Notes under the pieces: generated by a model
Told to the model about the DNA's origin: nothing
The model's database searches: none
The model's input: only the letters and a program-made list of their open reading frames with translations
Origin: Dimorphilus gyrociliatus
Taxonomy: Eukaryota; Animalia; Annelida
NCBI GenBank assembly: GCA_904063045.1
Contig: CAJFCJ010000013.1
Location: 1,594,156 to 1,658,155, forward strand
DNA length: 64,000 nucleotides
Direction: 5' to 3'
Made by a program: the position numbers and the translations under genes
In this document: positions 44,619 to 49,866 of the stretch, piece after piece
How the letters are laid out: each line of letters begins with the position of its first letter
Position numbering within the stretch: the first letter of the stretch is position 1

Positions 44619-45779
44619 TAATTGAAAGAAATAATTGCAATATAGCAAAGAAAAAAAATGAAAACAACAAGAGCAAAATAGACTCTGATAGTAGAGGAAT
44701 ATACCGCAATGAATAATTCACGATGTCATTTTAATAATATAATCAAGTCAATGAAGGCCGTTCAAGGTGACTCCTACTTGACAGAAAATAAGTATTTCTA
44801 GGAAATCGTACCCCATTCTGCCTGATATTTGCAATTAATTACTAGCTTACAAGGGAAAGAGATTAGTAAAAAAAAAGAGAAAATAGGGTGAAAGGATGCT
44901 AATTAAAAGTGAACTTTCTCTTTCGTCGTAATTTAAATCTAGTCTCTGTCGATTTTCGTTACAAAACAAATTTACTCTACAATTCGAAATGAAAAGGAGC
45001 TTGACCGATATATTGAATTATCTATCATCCTAAACATCATTAATCTTGTAGCGTATTACTGTTGATTAATGCTTAATAACGGTAAATTTTTCTTACGTAT
45101 TTCCATCCCAGAGTTGTTTTACAACATTCACAAAATATATCGGCAACCGAATGCAGTCCTGTTAACAAAACCCGATCTTCGCACTGGCTCTGGCCTATAT
45201 TCACCCTGTAAAAAAACGTAAATAGACACTACATTAATAATTTTGGGCCTAGCTGATATGTAAACAAGGTACTATCTAGGTAACTACGGTTAAAAATAAT
45301 AATAGAAGAGTGAAACAAGCTGAGGCCTATTTTTTTTTCAAGTTATTGATCTTTAACAAGTTGATGAATTGTATTATTAAGATAAAAAAGAATAAAATAG
45401 ATAAATAAATTGACGGGGAGATAGAGAAAAGAATAAGCAAGAATAAAGGGAATAGTACTTAAAAAACACGAAACTTATTCTACTCATAAAAAAGATAAAG
45501 ATACTAACACTGAATTGAAGAGATAAGCCCTTCCTTGACTGCCTTGGAAAGACTGTAAAAAAAATAAAAACAATGAGAATACAAGTTATTCGTCTAAAAA
45601 TAACTTCAACTTAAAGTCATTAGGTTACAAGGCAACGTCCTCGAGACAAATCTCTAGGAAAAGAATTTACTCACTTTAGATATAAGGTCATCGTGGTTTG
45701 CCAAATGAGCTCTACAATGAAGGCAACTGTATGTTCGATGACATTGAGAGGGTAAATACGCTTGGAACGTTTTCACCAT
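43985..45779 (-). CDS. YPEL: Yippee-like protein (YPEL1-4 type), four exons: 45779-45675, 45552-45509, 45205-45097, 44077-43985
   Basis: Spliced translation is [116 protein letters not shown]. Missed by the ORF track because the exons are short. Confidence 0.97.
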
Positions 45780-46952
45780 AATTTAAATTTTTTTTTAATT
45801 GCTGATTTCAATTTTTTTAAAGGACAACTATTCAATAGATAATCTTGATAGATAGGCTGTTATATTTTACCAGTATTGCACAATGTTTTTTACCAGCGTG
45901 CAGATATTTTTTTTCTCTAAAAAGAACAAAATACACAAAAAACGTATTAGAATTCGTTCTTTTTTTATGTCCAATACAAAAATCAATTAATTAACGTTAA
46001 GTATAGCTTCGTATAAGACTAAATAAATAAGAAACAACTGTAAAACCTACCTGGATGTAAAAAAATAAGATTGTGATTCTGCTGAACGTATGTGTTTGTT
46101 TACTTCTCTAACAGACCAGCTGTTCTGGCAAGCGGTTATATTATGTAAATAGTATGCAAATTTATCTATAACCAATCAACGTAAGTTTTACAACTTTGTT
46201 TTTGTAATACAAGATTTACGCTTAATTTTAGATATTGGACTTATTCGTTTTAAGGATCAGTTTCATTCGGACTTTATTGATAATTTTTCTTAAAAAATAT
46301 TAATAATTGTTCTTTTTTCAGCGCTTTTATTATATTATAAAATTAATCAAAACAGATGGCAGCTCTGTACTATAGTGTGAAGACTGATTAGTTTTTGAAG
46401 TGATGATATATATTGCGACAAAATGTAATATAACGCCTCAACTTTAAAATAGAAACTGTTAAAAGCACTCTAAATTTTGACAAAAACATCAGTCAATTTG
46501 TTCATTTGGCAAAAAATAGCATTACCCAAACAAAACAATATATCTACCTCGTCTTTCATCTTTTGTATACTTTTTCACGAGTTTAATAACCAATTTATAA
46601 CAGATGGCAGTACTGTCGTAAAAAAGTACCGATAAAAAAAACAACATATAATTTTTTCAACAAAGAAAATATGGTAAAATAAAAGGTTAAAAAGTAAAAT
46701 AATTTGAAAAAATGGATAGATTATTAAATATTTAATCTAAGAAATATATAAAACGTTAATAATTAGTATGATTGTTGGAGTTAAGTTGCTTTGGAGAACA
46801 ACACTACTTCCTCATAGGACTTTTATATAAAAAATTGTAAGGTTAATACGTAAATAATATAAGTGAGGCCTTTATAACAGTGGAATTTGAACTCTGTCTT
46901 CGACATTCTGTTAAAAAATAGTGTAAATGGTATGGAGTAGCTTACGGAAAAT

Positions 46953-47762
46953 ATGACATCGTTTCTTATTAAGTTACCCCTGCTAATCTTTGGATTAATA
47001 AGGGTCACTATCGAGTATTTGCAACTCGTTATCAATCTATGGAGAATGGATAAGGAGAAAAAGGAGAAAGTTCTCTACGACTTCCATGTAAAATCCAATA
47101 CTCATTTATCTCCTATTAAGTACAATGAAGTTGGTGTTACAATTGGTTCTTGGGAAATGTACAAGTATATTATCCGTAAGCAAATCGATTTAGAATTGTA
47201 CGGTAAATATTGTCAAGTAGGTTTACCAGCACCGAATCCTTCTGTTATTGAAGTTCGTGGAAAAATATCGAATTCCATCAAACAAAAGAAGAGTTTACTA
47301 TCCTTTGCTAATTCAGCAAGACCCTTAGTTATTAATTTTGGAAGTTGTACCTGACCCCCGTTTATGGCTCAAGTTGAGCATTTTATGAAAGTTGTTCATA
47401 ATTATTCAGATATAGTTGATTTTATTACAATATATATATCGGAGGCTCACGCAACGGACCAATGGCAGTTTGCTACTAATCCATTCAAAGTGAGATCGCA
47501 TAGATCTCTCGATGAGAGGATTACAGCCACATTTTTATTAAGAAAGGAATACGAAAAATACGGCTGGACTGAGTCGATGATGAAAATATCTGCAGATCCA
47601 ATGAATAATGAGGCTAGGAAGATGTATACAGCCTTACCAGAAAGATTTGGAGTTATTAGAAATGAAAAAATTGAATTCCTAAGTAAAGTCGGCTCTGAAT
47701 TTTACGTTGTTAGCAAACTAGAAGAATGGTTGCAAGCTTACCGTCTATCGCTAAATCAGTAA
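46953..47762 (+). CDS. DIO: Iodothyronine deiodinase-like selenoprotein, intronless, 269 aa with Sec at TGA 47352-47354
   Basis: The ORF-track pieces 46953-47354 and 47364-47762 are in one frame, joined by TTT GGA AGT TGT ACC TGA CCC CCG TTT ATG (FGSCT-U-PPFM). Also RPLVINFG, YISEAHATDQW, YTALPERF and an N-terminal hydrophobic anchor. Confidence 0.95.
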
Positions 47763-47891
47763 AGAAATATAACAACAATAGAATATCTATGCATATACAG
47801 TATTACTACGTAACAAAGATATTTTGTAAAAATCTTATCTTTTCTATCATTTGATAAACTGAATGAAGAGAAAATTTTTTAAGATACAACA

Positions 47892-47958
47892 CTTTATGAA
47901 TGACTAATATTATCAAAATCATAAAATATGATGGTAATACTACGATAATAATGTAAAG
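47892..47958 (+). ncRNA. SECIS element (eukaryotic form 2) in the deiodinase 3' UTR
   Basis: Helix I is CTTTAT/GTAAAG. The core is ATGA (47900-47903) with GA (47944-47945). Helix II is CTAATATTATC/GGTAATACTAC. An unpaired AAA sits at 47915-47917, with apical mini-helix ATCATA-aaa-TATGAT. AATAAA follows at 48062. Confidence 0.9.
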
Positions 47959-48130
47959 AGTTGTTTCCTTATTATATAATTCTCTGTTTTATTAAGAGGC
48001 AAGATTTTTAATTAATCAGTTCTCCCCTATCTATTAACTATTATATCATGATGATTAATTTAATAAAGAATAAGACGTTCTATATCAGTTCTAATTTGAT
48101 ATTAATAACTCTGTAACCATAGTCGGTGCC

Positions 48131-48187
48131 GATTGGATAGTTCCCTGCGTCTATAAATTTCTAGGCGTGCCGTACCAACGTCACATT
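48131..48187 (+). promoter_or_regulatory. Inverted CCAAT, TATA box and Inr-like element upstream of the small secreted-protein gene
   Basis: GATTGG at 48131-48136, TATAAA at 48152-48157 and TCACATT at 48181-48187, about 30 nt after the TATA; the ATG is at 48201. Confidence 0.55.
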
Positions 48188-48200
48188 TCAGACGTAAAAT

Positions 48201-49866
48201 ATGAAGAAGTTAGTTGTCCTTTCCTTGGCTATCATTATCGTTTTAGTTCGAACTGCTCCTTTAACGGAATTAGAAAAGAAGATTCTTTCAATTAACGATT
48301 TCGAAGAAAATCCTGAAAATGGTAAATTATTGTTTAAAATAAATAATCTTTCTCTTTATTATCATCAAAAAGATACTATTTTACTATTAAATAAAAGTCG
48401 TTTTAAAATTGTTCATTTCTCAAAAAGAGATAAATTCAGAGGGAGAGAGAGAGAGAGAAAAGGGGAGGAAGAGATTTAAGACTCGAATTTTCGGGAAAGC
48501 ACATTCTCTTAATCTTCTTTTATAATATTTTTGTTTGTTTTTTGTTTCAAAAACCGAGAATAGGAGAAGGTCTGCTTTTAACTTGACAGGCTTTTATCCC
48601 TTGTCCACATTATTATCTTTGATGAAATAGTCGCCAAAAATAAACATATTTTTATAATATCTGATCAAAATAAAGATATGAAAAATCCTTCTTTAAACTT
48701 TTCTCTCTCTCTCTCTTTCTCTCTACTGGTTATTTATTCTCCATTACTACCTTATTTTTCTTTGTCTTCCAAACAAGTAACTAAGTTCAAAAGTATAAAA
48801 AAAGCAATATCGAAACCCACATACAATAAGCAGTATACCGTATACATATAGATTGTATATATGTAAATATTCTAAATGAAGAGAGCATGTGTGATCATGA
48901 AATGACCAACCATTTGGGCATTTTCTTTCATATACAAATAATGATATGGAATACTTATCTATTTAAATTAATTCTATTATATATTTAAAAGTGATATAAG
49001 TAGTTTTTCATTTATGATAGATGTTTCTAATCAATTATTAGTTTCTATACAAAGTTGTAAATGTTTTTTTTAAATATGTCAACGTTTCTAAAAATACGGG
49101 AAAGGGGGAGAATCTATTGAATTATGTTTTGTTCCAGTTTTGGGAAGCCTTTAATATTTTATTATCGTTTAACATCATTTTTTTCTAACTTAAGTTTTAG
49201 AGATGCGTTAGAGGGAAAAGTCATTAAGTTTGGTCTCGGCTTATTATGGGATGCTCATATGTGGGGATCGAACCTGTGGGAGTTGGAGCGGTCAAACTTA
49301 ATGTATATGGAAATGTGTGAATGACCTAATAAAATTACTTTACTAGTGACAATTGCCCTAAAAGTATAATAATGTCTATTTAAACTATAAGCTTTTACTG
49401 TAAGTTCAATTTTGGTAACAATCAAATAAAACAGATAGAATGAAAAAGAGTAGGAAGGGGAGAAAGGGAATAAAGTGATAAGTTAAAAAGGAAAAAAAAC
49501 TAGATAGAACGAGATAGAACGTAAAGAATAGAATTAAAGGTAGAAAAATAATTATTTAAGATGAATTTAATATAATTAATAAGATAATCTATTGAACTTT
49601 TTACAATTGCGTCAAAACTTATAAAGTGTGTTTTTATACTAAAGAAACAAATAGAAGCAAATAGAAAATAAACTACTTTTTTCTACTTAAGGAATTAAAT
49701 TAAAATACCCATATTATTTTACACAGAGTTGCACTTTAGTCGGATACGAAAACAGCAAAAGGCACCTGTTCTTTGCGGAGGTGGCGGCGCTGCGAGAAAG
49801 AAATATGAATGTAATGATGGTTTAATGGGCGTTTGGTTAAGGCTCATTAAAAATAATGATTATTAG
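48201..49866 (+). CDS. Small secreted pro-peptide, 86 aa, two exons (48201-48321, 49727-49866)
   Basis: Signal peptide MKKLVVLSLAIIIVLVRTA, an acidic spacer, a phase-1 GT-AG junction, then LHFSRIRK-QQKAPVLCGGGGAARKKYECNDGLMGVWLRLIKNNDY*. AATAAA at 49874 lies just after the stop. Confidence 0.65.

Follow-up and report, generated by a model that had tools for sequence, protein, structure and literature searches.

A probable selenocysteine-decoded deiodinase-family gene with a predicted form-2 SECIS element in the annelid Dimorphilus gyrociliatus

Like the gene described here, the vertebrate gene DIO3 is intronless. [quoted passage not shown] Arg275 of Dio3 (Lys in Dio2) is the proposed clamp for the substrate carboxylate, and the roles of the proton-relay and loop-D residues in Dio2 and Dio3 have been described (PMC11592359). 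Sec deiodinase genes outside the vertebrates were counted by Jiang et al. 2012 (PMC3473315): Capitella teleta, an annelid, has 12, Lottia gigantea 4, Trichoplax 11 and amphioxus 9. Annotation pipelines are known to miss such genes (PMC3473315), and models of them are often cut short. A 2021 review lists putative Sec deiodinases in molluscs and annelids, three of which have been cloned in molluscs, the cloned enzymes including those of scallop and oyster (PMC8143656). Set beside the present gene by their published descriptions, the deiodinases of Capitella, Lottia, scallop and oyster belong to the same family and have a Sec active site and SECIS dependence, as predicted here. The Dimorphilus genome paper mentions neither selenoproteins nor deiodinases nor thyroid signaling, and reports no operons or trans-splicing (PMC7854359).

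The window, by which we mean the whole 64-kb stretch of DNA that was analyzed, contains a single reading frame that runs from an ATG at 46953 to a TAA at 47760-62 and whose translation is interrupted solely by a TGA at 47352-54. We assign a probability of roughly 0.9 to the reading that the frame encodes a member of the deiodinase family whose UGA is decoded as Sec, with the hairpin at 47886-47964 as its form-2 SECIS element. The ORF list holds the frame as two same-frame ORFs, 46953-47354 (133 aa, ending in NFGSCT plus the TGA) and 47364-47762, and translation across the TGA gives FGSCT-stop-PPFM. Upstream, an in-frame TAG at 46938-40 lies 12 nt 5' of the ATG. Coordinates and motif are as given in the original prediction, which had joined the two ORF fragments into one intronless frame with the TGA as its only break. 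The features of the coding region and its polyadenylation signal are as follows.

46953..47351, plus strand: first part of the CDS, 133 aa, with a hydrophobic N-terminal segment that leads into the first portion of the Trx-fold domain; last residues RPLVINFGSCT
47352..47354, plus strand: UGA, predicted selenocysteine codon, corresponding to Dio3 Sec170 and to Pfam profile position 114
47355..47762, plus strand: second part of the CDS, 135 aa (PPFMAQ...LSLNQ) and the TAA stop, identified by PF00837, the Dio3/Dio2 alignments and dN/dS
48062..48067, plus strand: polyadenylation signal AATAAA, 98 nt downstream of the SECIS

Both halves of the frame match the Pfam family T4_deiodinase (PF00837) above its curated cut-off of 27 bits: the N-terminal piece scores 36.5 bits over profile positions 36-113 and the C-terminal piece 101.7 bits over positions 115-236. 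In a six-frame search of the genome, the window gene scores 154.4 bits against the same profile, with one TGA inside the match. Compared with solved structures, the C-terminal piece finds Dio3 with an E value of 6.7e-18 and Dio2 with 2.8e-14. The N-terminal piece aligns to the mouse Dio3 chain (4tr3) through residue 56 (Thr169), with RPLV-NFGSCT identical, and the match of the C-terminal piece starts with PPFMA at residue 58, so that the residue skipped between the two is the catalytic Sec170. The TGA is hence the single position left out between flanking collinear matches, in the Pfam profile and the Dio3 chain alike, and the family motif FGS-x-T-U-PPF, which marks the beginning of helix alpha1, is present as NFGSCT-TGA-PPFM. 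The Dio3 chain has the same NFGSCT-Sec-PPFM sequence, whereas in the Dio2 chain (9H48) Sec is preceded by NFGSAT and followed by PPFT. With the TGA at Dio3 Sec170 and collinear Pfam and Dio3/Dio2 matches on either side, the motif is indeed the active-site Sec motif of iodothyronine deiodinases that had been recognized at this site.

A second statement about the motif stands only in part. The U-P-P sequence had been assigned to a D2/D3 type and associated with insensitivity to PTU, and the association of the proline with PTU is broadly right. The type assignment is invalid for this non-chordate enzyme, because proline at Sec+2 also occurs in the PTU-resistant D1 of fish and frog, and because PTU sensitivity depends on more than the Sec+2 residue (PMC8143656). 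Nor is the window gene orthologous to one particular vertebrate isoform. In the C-terminal half, identity to vertebrate DIO3/DIO2 is ~35-40%.

In the 4tr3 alignment, the proton-relay residues that accompany the Dio-specific insertion (equivalents of Ser167, Thr169, Tyr197, Glu200, His202 and His219) and the equivalent of Trp207 are all conserved; among them, Tyr197, Glu200, His202, Trp207 and His219 are residues at the edge of loop D shared with vertebrate DIO3 and DIO2. Because the full Dio2/Dio3 catalytic set is retained, the enzyme would most likely use its Sec to dehalogenate an iodinated phenolic substrate reductively. The position of Dio3 Arg275 and Dio2 Lys241, in contrast, aligns to Val, and the window protein has no equivalent of Cys239. 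A lysine sits one residue before this Val and could stand in for Arg275 if the alignment shifts.

These differences bear on the natural substrate. A genuine Sec enzyme of this family could act on something other than thyroid hormone, either on halogenated phenolics of another kind, for instance iodotyrosine derivatives of dietary or algal origin, or in a peroxiredoxin-like redox role. Besides the Val at the clamp position, which is Gln in the second Dimorphilus copy described below, and the missing Cys239 equivalent, such a role would be in keeping with the peroxiredoxin-like fold (PMC11592359). It would also fit the many copies present in animals without a described thyroid axis, for example the 11 in Trichoplax (PMC3473315), and the literature, in which no annelid enzyme has been biochemically shown to deiodinate iodothyronines (PMC8143656). 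The conservation of all six proton-relay residues and of Trp207 points the other way, as do the nearby lysine and the observation that in molluscs deiodinase expression and knock-down follow T4/T3 levels (PMC8143656). We give this alternative a substantial but minority chance; between iodothyronine deiodination on the one hand and other halogenated or redox substrates on the other, the odds are roughly even.

Whether the UGA is decoded or simply ends translation can be judged from related genes. A word search with the C-terminal ORF of the window gene returned one protein, 78% identical, which belongs to an ortholog (L012) carried by a 1029-nt transcript-like Logan contig of run SRR31837527. 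This contig comes from another sample, the 78% identity refers to the C-terminal half, and its sequence around the codon reads NFGSCT-TGA-PPFMAQVE. The alignment with the window gene is gap-free, with 37/18/64 differences at the three codon positions before the TGA and 18/13/61 after it. The corresponding dN/dS values (Nei-Gojobori) are 0.16 before the TGA and 0.09 after, at a dS of ~1.5. Both the codon-position differences and the dN/dS values show that the stretch after the TGA is under stronger protein-level constraint than the stretch before it, and the TGA itself has been retained despite near-saturating synonymous divergence.

A paralog on another contig of the Dimorphilus assembly (L001, G000:C6:3872623-3873429, equivalent to L001:1360-2166) is likewise intronless and reads 133 aa, TGA and 134 aa, with NFGSCT-U-PPFMAQ at the active site. 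The layout of 133 aa, TGA and ~133 aa is thus common to the window gene, its paralog and its ortholog. The TGA falls exactly at the Sec position in all three genes, across a dS of ~1.5 in one comparison and only ~35% protein identity in the other.

The rival reading of the TGA is that it is a true stop, leaving either a pseudogene or a truncated protein of 133 residues as the only product. Standard translation does end at 47354, as do gene callers, and the four ORF pieces for which an exact look-up was made are absent from a collection of 15 billion proteins. Against this stand the placement of the TGA in three genes, the stronger selection downstream of it and the presence of SECIS elements 3' of both paralogs. 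Because of the downstream constraint and the persistence of the TGA, we exclude a pseudogene or truncated product, which has only the slightest probability. An alternative genetic code as the explanation of the in-frame TGA was also rejected. The expectation that standard gene callers would split such a gene is borne out by the ortholog, whose contig was cut by the caller into two genes at the TGA.

Dimorphilus has only two copies, as against the 12 genes of Capitella and the 4 of Lottia; the two share about one third of their residues and lie unclustered on different contigs. In the paralog, the equivalent of His219 is Pro, whereas the window gene keeps His; conversely, the paralog has a Cys at the Cys239 position, which the window gene lacks, and Gln at the Arg275 position. 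As judged from sequence, these residue differences suggest functional divergence of the two copies. A word search with the C-terminal ORF of the paralog returned no relatives. The six-frame PF00837 search of the assembly (77.9 Mb in 349 contigs) gave three matches, the third of which (L003, G000:C238:8849-12238, ORF 1438-2115) was rejected as a worm paralog. It encodes a Cys-type protein (SITCPMY) of 225 aa in a bacterial-looking neighborhood on a small contig, among tightly packed same-strand ORFs, one of them alpha/beta-hydrolase-like. This contig of the assembly probably stems from a bacterium, either a contaminant or a symbiont.

The genome encodes components of Sec synthesis. It contains a tRNA-Sec gene, the look-up of which had been proposed as a check (80.7 bits; anticodon TCA according to ARAGORN), as well as SepSecS (274.5 bits) and selenophosphate synthetase (SPS; 187.9 bits). 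SECIS elements also accompany at least four further selenoprotein genes.

The candidate SECIS of the window gene lies about 140 nt 3' of the stop codon, and its parts, all on the plus strand, are as follows.

47886..47964: form-2 SECIS element, predicted from its fold, the pattern scan, Rfam, the 5' arm of the ortholog and the equivalent element of the paralog
47892-97 paired with 47953-58, extended by 47886-90 with 47960-64: helix I, from the minimum-energy fold of 47870-47970
47900-03 (AUGA) opposite 47944-45 (GA): quartet, completed by flanking U.U and C.C pairs
47905-15 paired with 47932-42: helix II, 11 positions with one A.C mismatch
47916-18: AAA bulge, 12 nt after the AUGA
47919-23 paired with 47927-31: apical mini-helix, 5 bp in the minimum-energy fold, with a 3-nt loop

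The quartet, helix II and AAA bulge of the form-2 SECIS proposed to follow the true stop were all recovered, and the mini-helix has 6 bp in the register of the original prediction and 5 bp in the minimum-energy fold. We scanned both strands of the window (128 kb) with a SECISearch-like pattern consisting of ATGA, 10-13 nt, AA, an apical part of 8-30 nt, a helix II in which one mismatch is tolerated, N-GA and a 6-bp helix I. The hairpin at 47886-47964 is the only locus that matches, and the paralog has a single match as well, 122 nt after its stop. Dinucleotide shuffles yield a mean of 0.67 matches per 128 kb. Given these single hits and this shuffle rate, a chance match no more than a few hundred bases behind both TGA genes, on the right strand, is very unlikely.

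Comparison with Rfam is less direct. A search of the surrounding 2 kb (E<=10) returned no SECIS, only chance snoRNA-like matches. When the window hairpin alone is searched, the best of 4227 families is SECIS_5, with 24 bits over its full length, short of the gathering score of 50; the best family for the paralog hairpin alone is SECIS_1, with 24.4 bits, short of its gathering score of 35. Genome-wide, SECIS_1 finds only one element above the cut-off, behind a SelU/PRXL2-like gene with a GUxxC motif, and places those of three further selenoprotein genes below it. The loci of these four elements (L008-L011) are C6:947667, C28:168164, C7:1505643 and C19:3022914 of assembly G000, and the genes behind which they lie are these.

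SelU/PRXL2-like gene, above the cut-off
Thioredoxin reductase (TrxR) gene with a GCUG end, 27 bits
Glutathione peroxidase (GPx) gene with NVASKUG, 22.4 bits
Rdx-family gene with CxxU, 20.7 bits

With 21-27 bits, genuine SECIS elements of the worm are thus in the range of the deiodinase hairpins. The cut-off is too strict for this AT-rich genome and no defining property of a SECIS, since the genuine TrxR, GPx and Rdx elements also fail it, and Rfam gathering scores miss most SECIS elements in Dimorphilus.

The comparison with related genes extends to the hairpin itself. The ortholog contig ends inside its SECIS, and the 5' arm that it still covers, ATGACTGATATTATCGAAA, matches the window at 18/20 positions; no other block of the distal 3' UTR is as well conserved between the two. 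Provided that the 3' arm is the same, one of the two changes would replace an A-U pair by a G-U pair. Between window and paralog, helix II contains one double change (C-G to U-A) and one single change (U-G to C-G), and the mini-helices are wholly different in sequence and paired in both. Folding energy is unremarkable, with z scores of -1.97 for the window hairpin and -0.98 for that of the paralog.

These weak z scores and the sub-threshold Rfam scores are what could be held in favor of a selenoprotein gene whose functional element lies elsewhere, the hairpin at 47886-47964 being something other than its SECIS. The absence of a second pattern match on either strand of the window, the conservation of the 5' arm in the ortholog, and a paralog element of the same design at the same distance make this reading highly improbable, and we continue to regard the hairpin as the SECIS of the window gene.

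A much smaller hairpin, GCTCA-AGT-TGAGC (5 bp), lies within the coding region at 47367-47379, where it starts 13 nt past the UGA. The ortholog has the identical hairpin (492-504), with four third-codon positions among the conserved ones, and the paralog lacks it. This may be a Sec-redefinition-like element, with the caveat that its conservation is not significant (~0.09 by chance). The broader view that Dimorphilus has a minimal annelid deiodinase set of two divergent Sec copies, of which only the window copy keeps the whole proton relay, possibly with such a redefinition hairpin, is speculative and in our judgment unlikely.

Transcription-like coverage of the gene comes from a run (X2) whose library type is not on record and which is RNA-like by its splice joints and depth: GT..AG and CT..AC joints appear in both neighboring genes, and an exon contig of a neighboring gene has a depth of ~98, as against 12-15 for the intron contigs of that gene. 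A contig of 2106 nt from this run, 100% identical to the window, spans 46216-48321 without a joint. Within it lie the TGA, the hairpin and the AATAAA signal, and its end coincides with the donor of the first exon of the next gene. Assembled contigs reveal neither transcript ends nor local depth, and what this contig shows is an unspliced form across the TGA. RNA had been proposed as a check for an intron at that point, and the contig indicates none, with the reservation that its RNA-like library is of unrecorded type. The transcript-like contig of the ortholog continues from the CDS into the 5' arm of the SECIS.

At the 3' end, the AATAAA at 48062-67 is the only AATAAA or ATTAAA in 47763-48210, from the stop to the next gene; neither hexamer occurs between the stop and the hairpin. 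The claim that the hairpin lies upstream of this signal is thereby confirmed, and the transcript would probably be polyadenylated downstream of it, with the SECIS retained in the mRNA.

A marine metatranscriptome from 2025 (X1) contains contigs 95-98% identical to the window on 46955-47287 and 47571-47732, and 9/12 of the listed CDS differences are synonymous. Given these contigs and the 78% identical ortholog in SRR31837527, relatives of the worm, some close and others more distant, are detectable in environmental or other public RNA data.

The following model is conditional on Sec insertion. The interval 46953-47762 is a single-exon gene that would encode a 269-residue, putatively membrane-anchored enzyme with selenocysteine at residue 134. 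Its residues 2-30 are hydrophobic, as is the membrane anchor of the vertebrate enzymes, with a Kyte-Doolittle KD(19) maximum of 1.80 at residues 2-20. The mRNA would carry the form-2 SECIS in its 3' UTR. As established for eukaryotes, SBP2 and eEFSec would bind there and bring Sec-tRNA(Sec) to the UGA. The ribosome would thereby pass the UGA and continue to the TAA at 47760.

Because Sec deiodinases of annelids and molluscs were reported in 2012, we regard the gene as an annotation correction and not a discovery. The correction concerns a gene model that is divided or omitted by ordinary callers, and the selenoproteome of this model annelid with its compact genome gains two deiodinases. If the window gene does encode a true thyroid-hormone deiodinase, Dimorphilus would offer a compact, tractable system for asking whether iodothyronine signaling controls its growth or its progenetic, miniaturized body plan.

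Upstream of the deiodinase gene, a minus-strand gene at 45508-46157 has introns at 45553-45674 (122 nt) and ~45915-46050 (CT..AC). The RNA-like contig covers the 737 nt from this upstream gene to the deiodinase ATG, which implies that the 5' UTR is long or that divergent transcripts overlap. On the downstream side, <100 nt separate the deiodinase AATAAA from a TATA-like box (~48150) of the next gene (48201-49815), which starts with an ATG at 48201 in a signal-peptide-like first exon. The first intron of this gene (48321-49725, GT..AG) measures 1405 nt, very long relative to the genome median intron of 66 bp, and its splice is present in both X2 and the marine metatranscriptome.
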